Assembly (NCBI RefSeq): GCF_001194135.2
Contig: NC_068982.1
Coordinates: 67,790,430 to 67,854,429 of the forward strand
Source: Octopus bimaculoides
Taxonomy: Eukaryota
Reading direction: 5' to 3'
Length of the DNA: 64,000 nucleotides
A program made the position numbers and the translations under genes. Below are positions 17,964 to 64,000 of this stretch, piece by piece (the first letter of the stretch is position 1; every line of letters begins with the position of its first letter). The notes under the pieces were generated by a model. It saw only the letters and a list, made by a program, of their open reading frames with translations. It was not told the DNA's origin and ran no database searches.

Positions 17964-20900
17964 TTAGCAATAAAATATTAAAACATCTGACCAGCCCTAT
18001 TACTTACGGGAAAACAATACAAATGAGCTTATTGAGAGAGTAAGCTATAGAAAATAATCTTGGTATGATAGAAGAAAAGTGACTGTGGTTTTGAAATCAG
18101 TATGCCAATCTTAGTTTAAATCAAATGAAAAAGCAAACGCAACAGAAATTATGTTCCTTGTGTTTTCAATGATTAACATTTGATTAATGCTATGGCTATA
18201 TTATAAGGTAATTTGTCTCGCAATACAGATTGGGAAAAGCTTTCTATATACAATAATAAATTCCAACAAAGATAAAAGTTCGCTTTGTATTGTGCAAATT
18301 CTCTAAGATTTATTATAAATTTTCACCCGAGAGACAAGATTATTCTTTAGATAAATAGCTAATGTGAGAAAAAGAGCGAGTGAGGTGTGGTGTAGGCAGA
18401 CCATAATTAACTTTAGTATCAGAGCTTGAAATCGGTTTAGGTGATTAAGAATATTGATAAAGAGATATTTAATTGTCTAGTTCTCGGTCGTCAAATATAA
18501 TTAAAGTTATATTACTGTAATAGCATAATTTTTAAAAAGCAAATAAAATTTTAGTGAATTATTATCAGAATTTCTTTCTCCAAAGTCTTCTGGTTTATTT
18601 ACGCCATGGAACTCGTGCAAACGGCGGATGTGGAGCTAAATTATTATATTTGTTTGTTTCTTGACTCGATTTCCCGAGTTCGAACCTTGCATAGACACCT
18701 GGTATGGTAATTTTTGCGTCTCTCCTCCGAGAAAACCTTTTGATTTCACAGCACTGAATATTCAACCAGAATTCTAGTCTATTAATATTACTCTGTATAT
18801 ATTTACATGCAGTATTCAATTACGTGTAATTTATGGGTAATATCTCATTATTTTTAATTTTAGGTAATAATAATTTGAATTTTGAAATCTATGTCATACA
18901 TAAAANNNNNNNNNNTTGACTAGCTGCATTAAAATGTGTTAACTCTCACATTATTACTGTTTTTCCTGCAAGACTTATTCTCTAATTCTCTAATAATTTC
19001 AGTTATTCTACGCCAATCAATATACAGTCTTACAAATCTATTTAGTATTTTCCCTGAAAACTACCCCGGCAAATATTGCGAATATTTATTCATTTATGAA
19101 TTTCACTCTAAAGGCTGTGGCCATGCTGGGGCACCGAAATCTGTTGTTAAGTAATATTAAAATGTTTAATACACCCTAATAGTATTTAGTTATTTCGGTT
19201 AGTATAAGAAACAAACTCCAAACGAGTTACAATACCATTATAAAATCATTCTGGTTCTATACAGTCCGAGTTCATATCTACCATGATCAACTTGACTTTT
19301 CATCCTATCATAAAATATAGTATTAGTTAAAGTACAGAAATCCATGTAATCACTTATCCCTCTCCCTCAGAATTCCCGGTCTTGTGTTCATATTGGTTTC
19401 AAATTTTGGCACAAGGTCAGCAATTTCGGAAGTACTTGTCTTATTCATCCCGAAAGGATGAAAAACGAAGTCGACCACGTCTGAAATTAAACTCAGAACG
19501 TAAAGACACACGATATGCAGTTAGGTATTTTGTTTGGCGTGCTAATGATTCGACTATCTCGCCGCCTTTCTTGTGTTTTTTACATTCTAAGTTCAAGTTA
19601 CTATATCAAAACAAATTATTATAAAATCATTCTGGCTGTTTCTATTTTGAGCTCAAATCCCATCGAGATCATTATTGCCATTCATCCCTCTGGGGTCATA
19701 AAATAAATTACTAGTTTAAGTACTGGAATTAATGTCATCTACTTAATCATTTCCCCCAGAATATCAGGTCTTGTGCTAACCTAAAAAACAACTATTAAAA
19801 AAAAAACAAAAAAAAAAACATTCAAGCATTGTCCTCACCGAACTTTCCTAAAATATTTTTAAGGAAAACACTAAATGATGGGAAACAGTACACTGGTAGG
19901 CATAAAAAATAGAGTAGAAATGTTTAGAGAAATGTTTAGAGTAATAACTCAAATACACCGTCCGCATGAAAAACAACAAAGATTAAGTTAGTGTAAACAA
20001 ATTTAATGCAGTTAAGTTAAAGTTAACATACATATATATGTTGACTTTATATCATTGCTTACGGTATCTGTTCAACAAATACGAACCTAAGCAATTACAT
20101 ATTCGATTAAAAATAAATATAAGGAAGCTCATTATTTAAAGCATCACAGTTTTTAAGAAATTCAAAGCATTGGCCCTATATGTACTCTACCAGAGATAGT
20201 TCAAGCTACTACAAGAAAGTAGTTTAATGTTGGATAAAGCCACACCAATATTTATTTGTTATGAAGGCGGCATGTAGACAGAATCGTTACCGAACCGTAC
20301 AAAATTTTCAGTGGCATGTCTTCCGACTTCACGTTCTGAGTTCAAATGCTTCCATGGTCGTCTTTGCCTTTCATACTTTCGGAGTCGATAAAATGAGTAC
20401 CAGTCAAGCACTGGGGACAAAGCAATCGACTTACCCACTTCCCCGAAATTGTTGGCCTTGTGAAAAAATTTGAAACTAATGTTTAGTAATTAGGGCGATC
20501 AGCTGGCAAAATCGTCTGTCTTTACCTTCTGAGCTCAAATGCCGCCAATATTTAGTGTTACCGCACAAGACATATAACGAACTTTGTATAGGATCTTACT
20601 TTGTATTGGGTTAGTTAATTCTCTGGTTCTATATTATCTAAAACATGTAAGTAAATAGAAGAAACTAGTATTGTTAGAAAATACACGCCAAATATAATAG
20701 AAAACAATATCTGGACGATATCATGTTATGTGTTCGGTTGTCAAGAATGTCAATAATGTACAACATTTAAATAGGAGATCAATGATTTACGTTGTAGACT
20801 GTTATCAATTTCACGTATGATTGATGGACAAGTCTTTGATTCTCGGCTAAAGCCATTCACTTCATTTGCGTCATTCGTGCCTTTGATAAACGAATGTATC

Positions 20901-25438: not shown

Positions 25439-26396
25439 NNNNNNNNNNNNNNNNNNNNNNNNNNNNNNNNNNNNNNNNNNNNNNNNNNNNNNNNNNNNNN
25501 NNNNNNNNNNNNNNNNNNNNNNNNNNNNNNNNNNNNNNNNNNNNNNNNNNNNNNNNNNNNNNNNNNNNNNNNNNNNNNNNNNNNNNNNNNNNNNNNNNNN
25601 NNNNNNNNNNNNNNNNNNNNNNNNNNNNNNNNNNNNNNNNNNNNNNNNNNNNNNNNNNNNNNNNNNNNNNNNNNNNNNNNNNNNNNNNNNNNNNNNNNNN
25701 NNNNNNNNNNNNNNNNNNNNNNNNNNNNNNNNNNNNNNNNNNNNNNNNNNNNNNNNNNNNNNNNNNNNNNNNNNNNNNNNNNNNNNNNNNNNNNNNNNNN
25801 NNNNNNNNNNNNNNNNNNNNNNNNNNNNNNNNNNNNNNNNNNNNNNNNNNNNNNNNNNNNNNNNNNNNNNNNNNNNNNNNNNNNNNNNNNNNNNNNNNNN
25901 NNNNNNNNNNNNNNNNNNNNNNNNNNNNNNNNNNNNNNNNNNNNNNNNNNNNNNNNNNNNNNNNNNNNNNNNNNNNNNNNNNNNNNNNNNNNNNNNNNNN
26001 NNNNNNNNNNNNNNNNNNNNNNNNNNNNNNNNNNNNNNNNNNNNNNNNNNNNNNNNNNNNNNNNNNNNNNNNNNNNNNNNNNNNNNNNNNNNNNNNNNNN
26101 NNNNNNNNNNNNNNNNNNNNNNNNNNNNNNNNNNNNNNNNNNNNNNNNNNNNNNNNNNNNNNNNNNNNNNNNNNNNNNNNNNNNNNNNNNNNNNNNNNNN
26201 NNNNNNNNNNNNNNNNNNNNNNNNNNNNNNNNNNNNNNNNNNNNNNNNNNNNNNNNNNNNNNNNNNNNNNNNNNNNNNNNNNNNNNNNNNNNNNNNNNNN
26301 NNNNNNNNNNNNNNNNNNNNNNNNNNNNNNNNNNNNNNNNNNNNNNNNNNNNNNNNNNNNNNNNNNNNNNNNNNNNNNNNNNNNNNNNNNNNNNNN

Positions 26397-41697: not shown

Positions 41698-42597
41698 NNN
41701 NNNNNNNNNNNNNNNNNNNNNNNNNNNNNNNNNNNNNNNNNNNNNNNNNNNNNNNNNNNNNNNNNNNNNNNNNNNNNNNNNNNNNNNNNNNNNNNNNNNN
41801 NNNNNNNNNNNNNNNNNNNNNNNNNNNNNNNNNNNNNNNNNNNNNNNNNNNNNNNNNNNNNNNNNNNNNNNNNNNNNNNNNNNNNNNNNNNNNNNNNNNN
41901 NNNNNNNNNNNNNNNNNNNNNNNNNNNNNNNNNNNNNNNNNNNNNNNNNNNNNNNNNNNNNNNNNNNNNNNNNNNNNNNNNNNNNNNNNNNNNNNNNNNN
42001 NNNNNNNNNNNNNNNNNNNNNNNNNNNNNNNNNNNNNNNNNNNNNNNNNNNNNNNNNNNNNNNNNNNNNNNNNNNNNNNNNNNNNNNNNNNNNNNNNNNN
42101 NNNNNNNNNNNNNNNNNNNNNNNNNNNNNNNNNNNNNNNNNNNNNNNNNNNNNNNNNNNNNNNNNNNNNNNNNNNNNNNNNNNNNNNNNNNNNNNNNNNN
42201 NNNNNNNNNNNNNNNNNNNNNNNNNNNNNNNNNNNNNNNNNNNNNNNNNNNNNNNNNNNNNNNNNNNNNNNNNNNNNNNNNNNNNNNNNNNNNNNNNNNN
42301 NNNNNNNNNNNNNNNNNNNNNNNNNNNNNNNNNNNNNNNNNNNNNNNNNNNNNNNNNNNNNNNNNNNNNNNNNNNNNNNNNNNNNNNNNNNNNNNNNNNN
42401 NNNNNNNNNNNNNNNNNNNNNNNNNNNNNNNNNNNNNNNNNNNNNNNNNNNNNNNNNNNNNNNNNNNNNNNNNNNNNGAAATAAATACAATAAAAGTTTG
42501 TTCAGTGCTTATATAATCAATAATAAATATATGGATGGATGAAGTATGAATAAAAAAAAACATACTTCGGAAAAGCTCTTCGTTAAATTAAATATAA

Positions 42598-46649: not shown

Positions 46650-49600
46650 TAACATCTCAGCAAATGCCTACAAATGTAGTTTACTTAGCACATCAACAAC
46701 AACTTGCAACAAATATAACAAACGTTCAGAGAAAAATGAACTGGTCAATTGAAGGTCTGGCAAAAAATCTTACTGATGAACCTTTCCAGGAAGAAAATAT
46801 TCTTCATATAATGCCACAACATAACGCAGGAAGTCTTTTTTCATCTGTTTGTCCGTACTGAAAAGCTTATCATTGGCCTCATAAACTCAAAACTCTCTGC
46901 TGTTTCCAGGGAAAAGTGAAACTCACTCAATTACCTCCTGCTCCATCAAATATACTGAAATATTTCGATATCACTCAAGCAGGAAATTCTTTTCTCAGTA
47001 ATATACGTGCACATAATAATGTGCTTACCTTAGCTTCAATTGGTTGCGAAGAGATTAGAGCAACAGGATTTAGTGTCCCGTTTAAGATCCAAGGCATGGT
47101 TTATCATATTATTAAATTATTATTTCCAAGTGATGCTTCACCCAAGTTTGCGCAGCTAATTTGCTCAGCTAATTTGGATGTTGTCATCCTGCAGAACCTG
47201 CAAGAAGATTTGCACTATTACAGCACATACATAAGAAGCTTCAAAGCAGTCATTGAATTACTAGACCCCGAAAATGTGAATATTATTCTATATGCTGAAA
47301 AAAAGGTAAAGCCCATTGATTTCCATTGTCGCACATACAGTCTTCCCATGGCATAAGAGATTGCTGTTATTGAACCTGATATAACATTAGGTCTCTTGGA
47401 TATCATTCTTCATAAAAGAGATGGTGGTCTTCAGAGGATTCATTAGATGCACCGTTCTTATGATCCTCTGCATTACTGTTACTGTTTCCTTGGGGGAATG
47501 ATGGGTTTCAGGTTGGTTTGAAAAAGATTGACAACAACCACACACTCATACCTACTGATTTCTACTGTTATCGGTTACAGGTTAGGCAATGTGACTAGCA
47601 TTATCATGGATAGAAGGCGACTCATGCAGCAATAAACTGTAGATGCTCTGGCAAAAATAGGACATTGTCGCCTTACTTGGGCTCAAAATAATCAAACCAT
47701 GATACGAGCTGAAAAGTATAAAGGTTTTTATGATGCTGTGGCTGAAGGAGATTCAGAAAATGCAGGCCGGAAAATTGTTCTTCTACCTTCAATCTATGGT
47801 TTCCCTCGCTTCTACGATGAGTGCTTCCAAAACTCAATGATTGTGGTTCAATATATGGGAAAGCCATCTTATTTCATCTCAGTGACAACCAACCCTAAAT
47901 GGGATGAAATAAAATAAAAACTAGAGTGCACCCCAGTAACCTATGGACTGTTCTGATATATGTGCAAGAGTCTTCAAGATCAATTATGACAGCCTCATGG
48001 ATGATATACTAAAGCAAAATATCTTAGGAAAAGTAGTGGCTCATTCTGCTACAGTAGAGTGGCAGAAACGAGACCTCACTCATGCTCATATTCTGCTGAT
48101 AATGACTGAAGATAGCAATCCCAAGACTGCAAATGCCATTGTTTAAGTAGTTTACTATGAAATTCCTTATAAAGTGACTAATTCAATTCTTCATAAGATC
48201 ATCACATTCTGCAACATTCGTGGGCCATGTGGACAAGCTAATATGATGTCTTCATGTATGGAAGGGCTAGGACAACCATGCCATTGCTCTAAAGGTTGTC
48301 TTAAGGCATTCAGACAAGCCACATTTGTTGCCAAAAATTCATTTTCTGAATATAGAAGGAGGGATAGACAGTATGGTGGTCATTCCCATACAATCCAATT
48401 TGAGGTCAAGAATTCACCGTTGATAATCATTGGATTGTTCCATACAACCCTTTCCTGTCATTGAGATATTAATTCCACATCATTTGTCAAGGCTGTTAAG
48501 TGTTTATATAAATACATCAAGAAAGGATCAGACAAGATCACTTTCACTATTAAGGATGATCAAGATAATTGTGTCCATGCCAAAAATGAGATTGAAATTT
48601 ATATTATGCACGGTACATCTCAGCCAGTGAAACATTCTGGAGAACTTATAAATTTCCGTTTCATCATCGCAAATCTCCAATTGAGAAACTGCCTTGCCAT
48701 TTACCTGGCAAACAAATGGTAGTACATCAGCAAGTACAAGAAGAAAGTGTTGTTTCTAGGGGACAGCCACTGACTAAGCTGACTGAATATTTTCAGCTGA
48801 GTATTAGAGATCCAATGGCAATGAAACATATTGTATATTGATATACCAAAATATTATACTTGGACAAACAAAAAGTGGTAAAGAAGAAAAAAGGGGCATC
48901 TGGATGGTGATGAACAATTTATGAGTGAATCTCTTGGACGCATTCCAACAATATCTCTCAGTAGACATCCGTCTGAGTTGTATTACCTAAGAATGATCTT
49001 ACATCACAAGGTTGCGTCAACTTCATACAAAGATTTGAGGACAACTGATGTAATTGAATTTCCAACATTCCAAGAGGCATGCAGGAAACTTGGTCCGTTG
49101 GAGGAAGATGAACAGAAAGACAAAGCTATGGAAGAGGCCGCATTCACTACATTTGGACATCAGCTGCGAGAGATCTTCAGCACCATCTTATTGTACAACA
49201 TGGAAGATGATCCTCTGTAATTCCGGGAGGAATGGAAGAATTGTCTTGCTGAGGATATCATGCATGAACATCATGAGCAAGTCATGTCAGAGCAAAGCGT
49301 GCAGATTGTTCTACAGAAGATCCAACAAAGACTTCAACATGAGGGCTTGGACATCCGTGTAAACTATGTATTTCCTCGGCCAGACCCAACTATCGTTACC
49401 ACACCAGCACTCAGTAGGGTTCTTATGGTAGAAACAGATTTCAATACACAACTGCAAGCAAACATAAATGAAGTTTTGCCAACATTGTATCCTAAAAATC
49501 TACGAGTTTTTTTCACAAAGTCGTAGTTGTTTTTCACAAAGTCGTTACCTCAGTAAATGAAAATGAAGGTAAAATTTTCTGTTTCATTGAAAGTGCAGGT

Positions 49601-59036: not shown

Positions 59037-59952
59037 CTCTCACACACACACATATGCTGTTTGCTTTTGATGCCCGTAAACCTCTAACTAAACGCATTGA
59101 TTTGATTCTTTTATTTTTTCAGATTAAATATAACTTTCATTTGATCTTAGACCACGTCCTCTGGAATATATTTTGTACTCACATGAGCTAAAATGAAATA
59201 TTGTAACATTCAGTCCTTTCCTATTAACGTAAAAGGTTTAATGAGCATAATGAAAATGTTTGAATGCGCAATGAAGTCAGGAGTTTAACATTTTCCTCTT
59301 GCAAACTAGAATCTTCTGGTTTCTGAAACTTCCATAGTGATAGAGAAATTATTGATCTCATTAATAAATACAAACGATATGATTTAGTTTTACTGTTTAT
59401 TTTAACAGAGGAATGTTAGGATATATTTAAATCTGTCGGTGTTGAAATAACCTGAAAAGAACAAAAAATACCGATTAGGTTACTACATAAATCAGCGTGC
59501 TTAAGAAAGCCTAAAAGCAATTTATTTATTATAATTAATCTGCAGTTTTAAGCTGTGTAAAAAAAAAAGAAAAAGAAAAAAAGGCAGATGTAAAAAACAC
59601 TTATTTTCACATACAGAAAAATAGATTATTCTAGCTGGTATATGGTTCTGTTTACCACTCATAATAAAGAAAAAGATACTTTTTTACACAAAGAGAACAT
59701 TTAACATCCGCTATTTATTGCAAAAAACAAACCAGAACTTAACTACAATGCCTAGACTAATTTGCATACCCGAGTTCTTCGGCTGCGAGACTGAATAATT
59801 ATTGTATTGCTTCAGTCATTAGACTGTGGCCATGATAAGGGTATCATGTTGAAGGATTTAATCTAACAAATCGTCTCCAGTACTTATTTTTTAGTCAGGT
59901 ACTGATTCAACAGGCGGAATTATTGCTGAACATCTAAGTTTTGAGGAAAAAG

Positions 59953-60000
<48 letters not shown>

Positions 60001-61720
60001 TGTGTGTGTGTGTGATAGATTTCCACACAACTTCCGTCTATCAAATTCATTCACAGGGTTTTGGTTTATAATCCAAGACACTTTCCCAAAGTACCGCGCA
60101 GAGGAACAGAACCCGAAACCGCATGGTTGCAAAGTAGGCTTCTTAGCAATGCAGCCATGTCTGTGCCTAATAGATATTTATTTACAGTTCAACATGTATT
60201 AAACTAAGGCATGTTTCAAGTAGCTAAACTACATTTTAGTTTTTTTTACCTTGAAACCCTACACAGATGTAATTATATGTAATTAAATGCATGAGGAATT
60301 CATAATTACTAGTCGCAATGAACAAAATTTATTAGAAAAACCGTTATGAGGTAAAATGTTACGAAATTTCCTGTCAGTAAGGGAGTAACGCTTCAGCTAT
60401 AAGAATAAAGAATATATTTCTAAACTCAATGTTTACTTCCAAAGGCGGTGAGCTAGCAGAAACGTTATATCTCCCTGGTTAAAATTGTTAACTGTATTTC
60501 GTCTGTGTTTACGTTTTTGAGTTCAAATTTCGCCGAGGTTGACTTTAACGTACAAATTATTTCATCAAATTTTTTTAAACTAAACTCTTTCAAACTTCCG
60601 ATACTGGTACAATGTGTCACATAGAACAGGGTTTACTCTTAACGTTTTTGAAAACATTTCGTATTTTAGAAGCGGTGTTTCGTCTGTCTTTACGTTCTGA
60701 GTTCAAATTCCTTCGAGGTCGACCTTGCCTTTCATCCATTTCGGATCTATTCAATTAGACGTACAGATTATCTAATTATTTTTTTTTTAAACTAAACACT
60801 TTCAAACTTCTGATACTGGTAGAATGTGTCACATAGAACAGAATTTACTCTTAACGTTTTGGACAAAATTTTGTATTTAGAAGTTATTTCGTCAGAAGTT
60901 ACAGAGTGACGATGGAAACATTCGTGTTTGATAAGTGCCAATACACGAAACTCTCAGCTTTTGACTTACTCTCTAACTTCTGCCGATGATATATATACAT
61001 ATTACATATATGTGTAAAAAAATCCCATCACCTGGTCCCTCGACACGCTAAAATAGCAGCCAAAGTATCGCCCTACCTAAATCACACGCCCATTGTATGT
61101 AATGTTCTAGATTATCCCTAAAAAGACAGTTTGCTGAAGGCTGGAATGTCTTTGATGATACGTTTGCAGTATCAGTGTTGATTTGAGGCTAAATAACAAC
61201 GACATTATGGTCAATTTCTATATTAACACTCACACGAGTTTCACTAAGCAAAAAAAATTTGATTTTTGCGTGGAATCAAATACCCTGACCTTCAAATATG
61301 CTGCGAATCCCTTATTTTGGTTCGGAAAAACTTAGGTGGGGGTCCCCCTATCCCAGAATCATTGGAAATATTTTTCGTTGAATGAATTCCTGTGGCCTCC
61401 TAATATTGCAAAAGTAGGTTACTTAAGGTGAGCCTGGTAATTGATGGTTTTGTGGTCATGTTGTTTGTAACTTATGGTGAGCCATGGTGCAACCAACAAC
61501 ATGGTAAAATTCCCTGCCATTAATTTGGTGTGGATAGGTAATATCAAATAATTCAATCGCAACATACATTTAAATTAAACATGAAAAATATTGAAATATT
61601 ATCATCACTTACATGGAAAAATTGAAATATTATCTTTCAGTATTTTATAAGGTAAAATCTTGAATTACTAATTGACACATTATTAATTATCTTATAACAG
61701 CAATGCCTGGAAAAATCATA

Positions 61721-62231
61721 GATTGCATGGAAAAATGTGAGCATGAAAAGTAATATTCTTAAGATTATAAACCTGGAAAGGTACAGGACAAGTTATTAAA
61801 CCTGTAAAAGTATAGGACAAACTATTACTTCAAGTAAAATAAAGAATAAGAAACATTTTACTTAAAATATTGCAGCTAAAATTAAAATTTGAATATTAAA
61901 AATTATTTTATTATAGTTTACAAATAACACTATACTTATTTAAGTAGAATTTGGCTAATTTACTACCTTAAATACAGAAAAAAGTGACTAATTAGACAAA
62001 CTTACAAATTAGCTGAACAGTTTTGTATAATAAATTTAAAAGATGAGAACTGTAAAGAGTGATAAATTAGAAGAACTGGCATTCTTTGCTGCAATATTTT
62101 AAGTAAAAAGTTTCTTATTCTTTATTTTACTTGAAGTAATAGTTTGTCCTATATTTTTACTTGTCCTGTACTTTTCCAGGTTTATAATCTTAAGAATATT
62201 ACTTTTCATACTCGCACTTTTCCATGTAATA
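61721..62231. mobile_element. Foldback/MITE-like element with about 150-bp inverted arms
   Basis: 61724-61876 (gcatgaaaagtaatattcttaagattataaacctggaaag...cttaaaatattgcagc) is the near-perfect reverse complement of 62089-62228 apart from one indel of about 11 bp. AT-rich spacer of about 210 bp, flanked by cata/cata (61717-61720, 62232-62235). Confidence 0.8.
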
Positions 62232-63523
62232 CATAAATGTGTAATGGTGTCTGTCTGTATGTGTGTTTGGGGTTACTCTAACTCCACCCACACCGTCCAA
62301 CCGATTTTAATGATTTGGGGTACATAGGTAGATCACATGCCCTAAACTTCAAATAAGGCCGGAACTTTTCAAAAACTCGATAATGCTCAGTTGGCATCGA
62401 TTTTTGTGAGCTCAATCGGACGTTTCAATGGAAATTTCCATAACGATGTTATTTTTCCTGCGGCTTTTGCATATTTTGTCCGATTTTGATTAAATTAGAG
62501 GAGTGAGAGAGGTTCATGGCAGTGAGAGTTGATGTCAGTAATGGCGTTGACAAAAGAATCGATAGGTTTGCCTGAGCAGTGGTTTTATAAAATCAATAGG
62601 CCGTAATTTTTATATTTTCTATCCGATTTTAATGAAATTTGAGATGTAAATAAATTTTGTGGTGGAAGAGATGGTAAAGGTGCTTATTTAATTCAAAATG
62701 GCTTGAAAAAGGCACAAATGAAAATAAGCACATTTCCTTAGAGACATCCTTGTCGATTTTGTAGAAATTTTACACGTGATTGCAGTTCATGTTCATTAGT
62801 TGATTCCAGCATCAAGAGCTGACAAAAAAAAAATCGATAATTGCACGTGAGCGGGGTATTTTATGAAATCAATAGGTCTTTGTATGCAATTAACCATAGG
62901 ATTAATATTTTATGCTGTAACTTTTACAGAATTCATCCGGTTTTGATGAAATTTGACATTTAATTAAAGTTTATGGTCGGAGTCATGTAATAGAATTAAA
63001 ATTAAACTGGTGAAAAGCAGAAATCGTCAAAATTCTCTCACAATAAAAATAATGAACTGATTTTGAAGAAAATTGACCCATGAGTAAAATTAAGCACCTC
63101 GACATAAGAAACATCGATTATTCATATAATGAATTAGGATTTAAAAGTCAATAGGATATTCTCATGTGAATGGGTCATATGGATTCTATTTTATGACACA
63201 ACCTTAACACTTTTCTTCGGATTTTGCTGAGATTGGACACGCTGATCAATTTTGTACAGAGAGTGGCATTAAGGGGAGAAAAATAGATAATCGTCACTCT
63301 CAACGGGTCCAGGTACACCCAAACGTTTGACTGCGGTTATAGAGACGGTCCAGTATGTAGGAGTGTGTCAAAATCGTTAACCGGGTAAAATCCCTACTGA
63401 ACCAGATATAACGTCTCATTGGATAAAAGTTGACACGAGGAACGTAGAACATTTCAATACAAGGTCAGAGATGGGCTTAACTTCAACACGGAAAACACGA
63501 GCAATGCCGGGTCAAACAGCTAG
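62232..63523 (+). mobile_element. Non-autonomous Helitron-like (DINE/HINE-type) element with internal degenerate repeats
   Basis: 5' tgtctgtctgtatgtgtg...accgtccaaccgattttaatg. A recurring ccgattttaatgaaatttg-like core at 62301, 62480, 62623, 62753, 62937, 63057 and 63218. 3' end gagcaatgccgggtcaaacagCTAG|T. Confidence 0.65.
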
Positions 63524-63541
63524 TTAATATATAAAGCCATA

Positions 63542-63547
63542 TTTAAT
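63542..63547 (-). terminator. Candidate polyadenylation signal (ATTAAA) of the peptide gene
   Basis: tttaat on + reads ATTAAA on -, 28 nt after the stop codon. Confidence 0.45.
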
Positions 63548-63575
63548 TTCATCAGATACGTTACCCTGTAAAGTT

Positions 63576-63854
63576 TCAGCCTGCCACATTTCCAGCTTTG
63601 ATAACTCGACAATTACGTATTCCATAGCAAGGGCTTCTTGTAGTGGTTACGCGATACTTAGGTCTTCGAACAAGACGTTTTTCTCTGTTAGAAAATACAG
63701 CACTGCGTTTTTCTAGAGAGAAAGCATCACGAAGACCTCCAGCTCTAGACAGGTTATCTTCGTACAAAATTTCACTTCTTGCAATGCAAGTCTCCAGAAG
63801 CCCAACCAAGAGGACTGCATAAATTAAACAGACAATTCTAACCATGTTGAACAT
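63576..63854 (-). CDS. Secreted pre-pro-peptide precursor (signal peptide, KR-cleaved propeptides, cationic 2-Cys C-terminal peptide); family unknown
   Basis: MFNMVRIVCLIYAVLLVGLLETCIA-RSEILYEDNLSRAGGLRDAFSLEKR-SAVFSNREKR-LVRRPKYRVTTTRSPCYGIRNCRVIKAGNVAG*. Hydrophobic N-terminus ending C-I-A and two dibasic KR sites. The second ATG (63845) lies in AACATGG Kozak context. TATA box upstream and ATTAAA downstream. Confidence 0.75.
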   Translation of the reverse strand: MFNMVRIVCLIYAVLLVGLLETCIARSEILYEDNLSRAGGLRDAFSLEKRSAVFSNREKRLVRRPKYRVTTTRSPCYGIRNCRVIKAGNVAG

Positions 63855-63858
63855 AATT

Positions 63859-63887
63859 ACTGTTGTCTATTTCAACTCGCTTTTATA
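63859..63887 (-). promoter_or_regulatory. Core promoter of the peptide gene: TATA box plus Inr-like site
   Basis: The minus strand reads gcTATAAAAgcgagttgaaatagacaACAGTaattATG. TATAAAA occupies 63887-63881, 26 nt upstream of the A of CAGT (63861), which is canonical spacing. Confidence 0.6.
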
Positions 63888-64000
63888 GCATTGATTCAGT
63901 CATTGTTCTGTCGCATATTAATGTTATGCACCTGTTTGGCTGCAATTTTATTAATCCTTTGCTATACCCACGTGCGCTCAGTAAGCAATGTTAAAACAGC

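Follow-up and report, generated by a model that had tools for sequence, protein, structure and literature searches.

Does a short open reading frame (ORF) near the end of a 64,000-nucleotide stretch of Octopus bimaculoides DNA (RefSeq assembly GCF_001194135.2, contig NC_068982.1, positions 67,790,430 to 67,854,429; the whole stretch is called the window below) encode a genuine secreted peptide, and if so, what kind of peptide is it? Comparison with other octopuses leaves little doubt that the ORF belongs to a real gene, conserved between species, whose product is a secreted precursor, and sequence similarity places it in a tandem multigene family that is restricted to Octopus and appears to evolve by gene birth and death. 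Regarding its role, we lean slightly toward a functional member of this prepropeptide family that acts, as our best guess, as a defensive antimicrobial-type effector.

The ORF encodes a conserved secreted prepropeptide

All gene coordinates refer to the minus strand, and the gene lies 113 nt from the end of the window, so that its upstream neighbors lie out of view. The coding sequence (63576..63845) consists of 89 codons and a stop (63578-63576) in a single coding exon, and is backed by the frame itself, by an identical protein already on record (P0001), by intact orthologs and by ratios of nonsynonymous to synonymous substitution (dN/dS) of 0.29-0.42. Its ATG at 63845 lies in the context caacATGg, with A at -3 and G at +4; an in-frame ATG at 63854 (MFN-), which would give 92 amino acids, is specific to the window and absent in the orthologs. 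Residues 1-22 (MVRIVCLIYAVLLVGLLETCIA; 63780..63845) form a predicted signal peptide, in which a basic n-region precedes a hydrophobic core free of charged residues, with C/A at -3/-1; this prediction draws on a heuristic score, on conservation in the family and on an AlphaFold2 helix with a predicted local distance difference test (pLDDT) value >80. Two EKR sites (residues 45-47 and 55-57 of the 89-amino-acid precursor) divide the remainder into the propeptide module that defines the family, RSEILYEDNLSRAGGLRDAFSLE-KR (residues 23-47; 63705..63779); a spacer peptide, SAVFSNRE-KR (residues 48-57; 63675..63704), kept in the three orthologs with the variants SAMFSNRE and GAVFSNRE and absent from the paralogs; and a C-terminal cationic peptide, LVRRPKYRVTTTRSPCYGIRNCRVIKAGNVA-G (residues 58-89; 63579..63674), with a charge of +8 and an isoelectric point (pI) of 11.4. 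This last peptide, LVRRPKYRVTTTRSPCYGIRNCRVIKAGNVAG, has 32 residues, eight of them Lys or Arg and none Asp or Glu, one C-x5-C loop and a terminal Gly that is the likely amide donor; its loop, CYGIRNC (C73-C79; 63609..63629), falls in a segment, SPCYGIRNCRVI, that is identical in all three species compared. These counts are those of the first-pass annotation, which had been made from the letters alone, and the TATAAAA, the initiator (Inr)-like site, the ATG, the 22-residue signal-like N terminus, the two KR sites and the ATTAAA also lie exactly where it had placed them.

The evidence that this frame is maintained comes from two other octopuses. On chromosome OX597815.1 of Octopus vulgaris there are two co-orthologs (L001 and L006), whose mutual identity of 96.8%, compared with ~91% to the window, indicates a duplication that postdates the species split. 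The L006 copy (18169-18435) is an intact, uninterrupted 89-codon ORF, and a third octopus species, read from Logan contigs (L002-L004), carries an intact 87-codon ORF (L002 352-615) whose propiece has lost 6 nt without a break in the frame. The intact copies in the two species are co-linear with the gene in the window. Nei-Gojobori dN/dS values for the three intact orthologs are 0.31, 0.42 and 0.29 (one-sided Fisher tests gave p of 0.02, 0.03 and 0.0009, respectively), and the C-terminal peptide alone gives 0.14-0.38 between species. Identity to both O. vulgaris copies is 94-96% in the promoter and ~94% in the coding sequence, and reaches its lowest value among the regions compared, 89%, in the intron described below. 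These conserved orthologs and dN/dS values below 1 bear out the proposal that a genuine gene lies here, one whose small secreted prepropeptide would end in a cationic, probably amidated peptide with a single disulfide. The accompanying idea that the gene is unannotated and would be missed by predictors has to be given up: a word-indexed protein search returned the identical 89-amino-acid P0001 in both UniRef and MetaClust, O. vulgaris models also exist, and the gene is already modeled, with the annotation "uncharacterized."

The length of the ORF is unremarkable, with 82 ORFs of at least 85 amino acids in the window. Its ATG, scored with an n/h/c heuristic, is the only signal-like start among the 189 ATG starts in the window that give at least 60 amino acids. 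When the window was shuffled 200 times under a first-order Markov model, a signal-like start arose 0.12 times per shuffle, and one combined with at least two dibasic sites 0.005 times per shuffle; the same combination with TATAAA no more than 70 nt upstream appeared in 0 of the 200. The set of features taken together therefore goes beyond chance. AlphaFold2, run with the family alignment, predicts a confident helix for residues 2-33 only, with pLDDT <55 in the peptide region, and so the model neither backs nor contradicts a beta-hairpin fold of the peptide.

A tandem family confined to Octopus

Word-indexed searches, started from the single sequence or from a profile, and an exhaustive hidden Markov model (HMM) search returned eight proteins, all from Octopus; the exhaustive profile-HMM search covered 1.84 billion representative proteins and found no relatives outside the genus. 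The precursor matched no Pfam-A family at E<=10, and the HMM searches likewise agree with the first-pass statement that no recognized family accounts for it. A PDB sequence search with the 32-mer gave chance matches only (E >5), an exact-protein look-up of the 89- and 92-amino-acid versions returned no record, and literature searches on the peptide strings, accessions and SRA runs yielded no matching paper. Whitnin/PKYMDT, elevenin, allatostatin-C, GGNG and calcitonin-type peptides, which had been considered for apparent likenesses (PKY…, the Cys loop and the 32-residue length), were dropped, as there was no HMM link and both positions and spacing were unsuitable.

Further members of the family are P0004 and P0007 in O. 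bimaculoides, two loci in O. vulgaris (L005 41692-41967 and L005 49401-49752) and P0008 in the third species. The four O. vulgaris copies span ~155 kb on OX597815.1; within the window there is no further copy. Of the two L005 loci, the first is an intact single-exon ORF with the loop CYGKRNC, and the second carries a frameshift in a T-run (49540-49550) of an assembly based on Oxford Nanopore Technologies (ONT) reads. In P0008 (L007 1055-1075), the signal-peptide region has lost ~10 nt, so that the conserved ATG and the remaining ORF are in different frames. The disruptions of L001 (see below) and of the 49-kb copy on L005 could be either residual ONT assembly errors or genuine pseudogenization.

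Conservation within the family is distributed very unevenly along the gene. All seven copies have in common a promoter of ~150 nt, in which TATAAAA never varies and which contains the blocks CAGAACAATGAC and AAAGGATTAATAAAA; these blocks show little or no variation among the orthologs and paralogs, even though the mature-peptide regions of the copies are unalignable. The signal peptide is the most conserved protein segment, with a near-invariant LLVGLL, and it is followed by one or two modules of the form SEIL(Y/N)E(D/N)…(S)LEKR per precursor, always ending in (E/K)KR. Past the last KR, the C-terminal tails are unalignable (SPQRPKKGKAYKGQGNKEYGK; SVSRRCRCSPERAGQRPISGPPIQCTCIRVISRLGT; SLASSASMSQCYGKRNCRRRGK; 2 x PQNRCPxGPVRAPGSYG…GK; SRRRHRKKKKTCSKRRGRKKHGKHGK), and that of P0008 is nearly pure Lys, Arg and His. 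What the tails have in common is their charge: each of the eight is strongly cationic (+6 to +16, pI 10.2-12), whereas the number of Cys is 0, 1, 2 or 4. KR is a cleavage site and a terminal G or GK the usual amidation signal, and G or GK ends seven of the eight peptides. This is the pattern that the first-pass annotation had foreseen: paralogs that keep the signal but diverge in the mature region.

The O. vulgaris models of two members deserve a remark of their own. In P0005 (L005 10001-41970) and P0006 (L006 10001-18438), exons lying 32 kb and 8 kb upstream are spliced on through a cryptic acceptor, TTTATGCAG|TCCTC, which lies among the signal-peptide codons, with loss of the signal-peptide N terminus. 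The uninterrupted ORFs at L005 41692-41967 and L006 18169-18435 each come with an ATG, a TATA box and a complete signal peptide of their own, and judged from these sequences the two models look mis-built. The O. vulgaris annotation therefore needs correction, as false upstream exons that replace the signal peptide would cause secretome screens to overlook these relatives.

Promoter and transcript structure

The conserved proximal promoter (63888..64000) runs past the end of the window and carries the blocks AAAGGATTAATAAAA and CAGAACAATGAC 5' of the TATA box (63881..63887), which reads TATAAAA in seven of seven copies. A putative transcription start region, ACAGTAA (63858..63864), with a CAGT Inr-like core whose A at 63861 lies 26 nt past the first T of the TATA box, is placed only by this spacing; GACAACA is kept in the orthologs at this point.

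The first-pass annotation described an intronless gene of ~340 nt that ends at ATTAAA. It was right in that the coding sequence occupies one exon, but a conserved donor and a downstream exon with AATAAA indicate an intron of ~4.1 kb in the 3' untranslated region (UTR). The predicted 5' splice site (63563..63565) ends exon 1 at G63565, with GT at 63564-63563 (CAGG|GTAACGT), 11 nt past the stop codon. A donor of the form AG|GTA(A/T)(C/A)GT is found at the homologous position in seven of seven copies, regardless of its distance to the stop codon. The intron (59452..63564, 4113 nt) would contain lineage-specific insertions and short repeats resembling short interspersed nuclear elements (SINEs); its homolog measures ~0.9 kb in O. 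vulgaris L006 and ~4.8 kb in L001. It ends at 59452 with a long polypyrimidine tract and TTTTCAG|G, and the predicted exon 2 (59375..59451, acceptor TTTTTTGTTCTTTTCAG|G, 3' end approximate), which is 92% identical to both O. vulgaris copies, holds AATAAA at 59401-59396 followed by a GT-rich element (GTTTGT). Acceptor, AATAAA and downstream GTTTGT are also kept in the paralogous exon at L005 46207-46359, in introns that are otherwise unalignable among paralogs, and the O. vulgaris model P0003 joins the donor-side piece to the downstream exon. From these conserved signals we consider it probable that the transcript has two exons, with all of the coding sequence in exon 1 and the AATAAA on a 3'-UTR exon ~4.1 kb downstream. 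The ATTAAA proposed earlier as the poly(A) signal (63542..63547) lies 17 nt into this putative intron; it is present in both O. vulgaris copies, reads ATTAAC in the third species (L002) and is absent from the L005 paralogs, and is at best an alternative proximal poly(A) signal. Under the established rule on the distance between stop codon and junction, nonsense-mediated decay would not be expected, because the stop codon is only 11 nt from the junction.

A single transposable-element insertion directly after the ATTAAA was also considered and is not established: the intron copies differ by large indels, and only short SINE-like pieces recur in the window. One such sequence, ACCTCGGCGGAATTCGAACTCAGAACG, is found at L002 1-27, at window 28916-28942 and at L005 41204, 46894 and 48937, that is, at contig ends and close to family members, and this repeat probably accounts for the breaks of the genomic Logan contigs.

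Proposed processing and function

We propose the following course from gene to peptide. The conserved TATA promoter would drive tightly regulated, high-output transcription of a short mRNA, and the 22-residue signal peptide would direct the 89-residue precursor into the endoplasmic reticulum. Cuts of the prohormone-convertase or furin type after EKR47 and EKR57 would remove the SEILYEDNLS… propiece and the short spacer, a carboxypeptidase and PAM would turn the C-terminal Gly into an amide, and C73 and C79 would close a disulfide ring of seven residues, so that the final product would be a peptide of ~31 residues with a charge of +8. We regard this processing (signal removal, KR cleavage, amidation and disulfide formation) as reasonably likely. 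Among paralogs, promoter, signal and propiece stay constant, while the C-terminal peptide is swapped wholesale and remains strongly cationic throughout.

It is this combination of a constant prepro cassette with a replaceable polycationic tail, in a tandem array with decaying copies and no Cys framework, that favors a host-defense effector. A conserved prepro region with a hypervariable cationic peptide is the pattern of antimicrobial peptide (AMP) families such as the cathelicidins and, as the nearest parallel, the frog preprodermaseptins; neuropeptide families conserve a motif, and conotoxins conserve a framework. By this analogy, host defense as the specific function has a chance somewhat below even.

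Several points weigh against a defensive effector, or against the evidence gathered for the gene. (i) Judged from the comparison between species, the Cys loop is invariant and under purifying selection, which would suit a receptor ligand no less than an AMP. (ii) The cationic peptide is only moderately hydrophobic, and AlphaFold2 gives no structure for it. (iii) The promoter blocks in all seven copies (window 63888-63960, minus strand, and the homologous promoters in L001, L002, L005, L006 and L007) include AACAATG, which we take to be Sox-type, and GGATTAAT, presumably a K50 paired-type homeodomain site with an Otx/Pitx-type core (GGATTA), and no kappaB-like site is evident by eye in the ~110 nt of available promoter. 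(iv) The family accessions were not found in the supplements of the O. vulgaris skin-mucus proteome. (v) The L001 copy of O. vulgaris (10001-; site 10228-10260) has deletions of 1 nt and 9 nt within the Cys loop. (vi) Alignments of O. bimaculoides proteins, along with ab initio predictors, fed into the O. vulgaris annotation pipeline, and its models may derive partly from those proteins and not from RNA. (vii) The Logan contigs were rejected as transcript evidence, since L002-L004 include the promoter together with DNA upstream of it and have repeats at their ends; these contigs, like L007-L009, are genomic, and no RNA-derived contig was found. (viii) The signal peptide was scored with our own n/h/c heuristic, not with SignalP.

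The alternative that fares best is a neuropeptide or peptide-hormone precursor, whose ligand, either the amidated looped C-terminal peptide or the KR-flanked SEILYEDNLS… peptides, would act on a nervous or endocrine receptor. On one hand, this is what a signal peptide, KR-flanked peptides and a C-terminal G/GK amidation signal would suggest, and a Cys loop that is invariant in three species, in a C-terminal peptide with dN/dS of 0.14-0.38, points the same way. The conserved, repeated unit of a neuropeptide precursor is usually the active one, and here the SEIL module is the most conserved peptide across paralogs and is doubled in several precursors. A presumed likeness of CY-IRNC to the conopressin/cephalotocin ring served as a lead only. 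On the other hand, the paralogs share no common C-terminal motif, length or Cys number, and the almost pure K/R/H tail of P0008 would be atypical of a neuropeptide. Moreover, the family is found only in Octopus and includes pseudogenized copies, whereas molluscan neuropeptide families are mostly ancient (PMC6425005). With no neuropeptide family of Pfam matched either, we consider this alternative rather unlikely, though well worth keeping in view.

A toxin of the salivary (venom) gland or of another exocrine gland, directed at prey or predators and evolving like the conopeptide superfamilies, is improbable. It would account for the conserved prepro against a hypervariable mature region, for tandem duplication with gene birth and death and for the disulfide and amidation features, and the TATA promoter would be consistent with high gland-specific expression. 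However, the cysteine framework is not conserved (0, 1, 2 or 4 Cys), the extreme polycations are more typical of peptides that bind membranes or polyanions than of channel toxins, and Pfam, HMM and PDB searches showed no homology to known cephalopod salivary peptides or toxin families. Finally, a nonfunctional chance ORF or a decaying pseudogene carried along by annotation pipelines is very improbable: the window has many ORFs as long as this one, three family copies are frameshifted (L001, L005 at 49 kb and L007) and the O. vulgaris models could stem from protein alignment, but three species hold the frame, the one indel between them preserves it, dN/dS is significantly <1, the combination of features arose in none of the 200 shuffles, and promoter, splice sites and poly(A) signal are kept even among old paralogs.

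Surroundings in the window

About 53 kb from the peptide gene, a 202-amino-acid ORF (window 9399-10007, plus strand) contains a complete fibrinogen C-terminal globular domain (PF00147, E of 3.9e-63) and, from this match, looks like an exon of a fibrinogen-related domain (FReD) gene of the ficolin/angiopoietin-like kind. A 191-amino-acid ORF upstream of it (3740-4315, plus strand), with weak coiled-coil-type matches only, possibly belongs to the same gene. FReD proteins are innate-immune lectins in mollusks; the linkage to the peptide gene may be coincidental. On the minus strand, a 185-amino-acid ORF (5875-6432) has a weak reverse-transcriptase match (PF00078, E of 0.002, under the gathering score) and is probably a decayed retroelement fragment.

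At 27855-27946, (TAACCC)x8 is followed by (GGGTTA)x7, that is, by head-to-head telomere-type arrays, adjoining a gap (N-run 27535-27836); these could be an interstitial telomeric repeat, the terminus of a mobile element or an assembly artifact. Between 28 and 32 kb there is a strong G-over-C skew, of +0.39 and +0.21 in successive 2-kb windows. In total, the window holds 5,773 N in 15 gaps (for example, 10333-11063, 25439-26396 and 41698-42477), which explain why the G+C content is very low in certain composition bins and why so many long "ORFs" are listed on both strands.

Significance

Cephalopods, to our knowledge, have no adaptive immunity. The defensive effector favored here would matter for that reason, and the Octopus family is a concrete candidate set that could represent either missing immune effectors or lineage-specific signaling peptides. 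Approaches by homology, pattern and immune challenge have identified no AMP in cephalopods (PMC7551771), and large surveys found few lineage-specific peptide families in them (PMC6425005). The gene is neither unannotated nor categorically new: secreted cationic prepropeptides are a known kind, and it is the family that is uncharacterized and lineage-restricted. In evolutionary terms, this family is a clean example of how a de novo or orphan peptide family can evolve through the reuse of a cassette. A bolder reading, which we put forward tentatively and consider doubtful, is that the locus belongs to the first gene-encoded cephalopod family of classical-type host-defense peptides, and that the Octopus array independently evolved the logic of the frog dermaseptins, in which a fixed cassette (promoter, signal and propiece) is joined to amidated polycationic warheads that can be exchanged freely.

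Comparison with known systems

The ring of the peptide invites comparison with the vasopressin/oxytocin family, since the local motif C-Y-x-I-R-N-C resembles the rings of conopressin (CFIRNCPKG-NH2) and cephalotocin (CYFRNCPIG-NH2), with Asn before the second Cys and likely amidation. In that family, a Cys1-Cys6 (C-x4-C) ring directly after the signal peptide is followed by a Pro7-x-Gly9 tail, GKR and a neurophysin with 14 Cys. In contrast, the octopus ring is a seven-residue C-x5-C ring at residues 73-79 of 89, 51 residues past the signal peptide; it is followed by RVIKAGNVAG and the stop codon, with no Pro-x-Gly tail; and the precursor has four Cys, two of them in the signal peptide, and no neurophysin domain. 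The resemblance is probably coincidental.

Thanatin and crustacean cardioactive peptide (CCAP) are loose analogies only. Like thanatin and other single-disulfide beta-hairpin AMPs, the octopus peptide is short and cationic, with one disulfide loop; thanatin has a C-x6-C loop near the C terminus of a 21-mer, and there is neither homology nor a predicted beta-hairpin on the octopus side (AlphaFold2 being uninformative, with pLDDT <55). With CCAP and conoCAP it shares a C-x5-C ring, a probably amidated peptide from a KR-flanked precursor and occurrence in mollusks, but it lacks the CCAP consensus xFCNxFxGC-NH2, in which the second Cys stands at the C terminus; its ring lies within a 31-mer, with 10 residues following, and no Pfam or HMM match links the two.

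The likeness to the conopeptides is one of organization: both are molluscan prepropeptides with a conserved signal and propiece, a hypervariable mature peptide, amidation, disulfides and duplication with rapid turnover. Unlike in conotoxin superfamilies, however, octopus members that share a signal peptide have no conserved Cys framework (0, 1, 2 or 4 Cys). The two groups are not homologous, and a further difference from conotoxin genes is that the octopus coding sequence lies within one exon.

The frog AMP precursors provide the remaining comparison. They consist of a conserved signal of ~22 amino acids, a conserved propiece with KR at its end and, at the C terminus, a hypervariable cationic peptide, in many cases amidated via G or GK, and in Rana-box peptides a C-x5-C disulfide forms a heptapeptide ring. 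The octopus signal and propiece are not homologous to theirs, given that no Pfam family matched, including the frog signal/propeptide family, and that the HMM finds Octopus proteins only; the octopus propiece is only weakly acidic, its peptides are less hydrophobic, and 10 residues follow the octopus ring, which is thus not C-terminal as in Rana-box peptides. Nevertheless, the CYGIRNC ring has the size of the Rana-box ring, and in architecture, although not in membership, the octopus genes resemble the preprodermaseptin/brevinin precursors: a conserved prepro region, a KR site and a hypervariable cationic, often amidated peptide, encoded by a multigene family.

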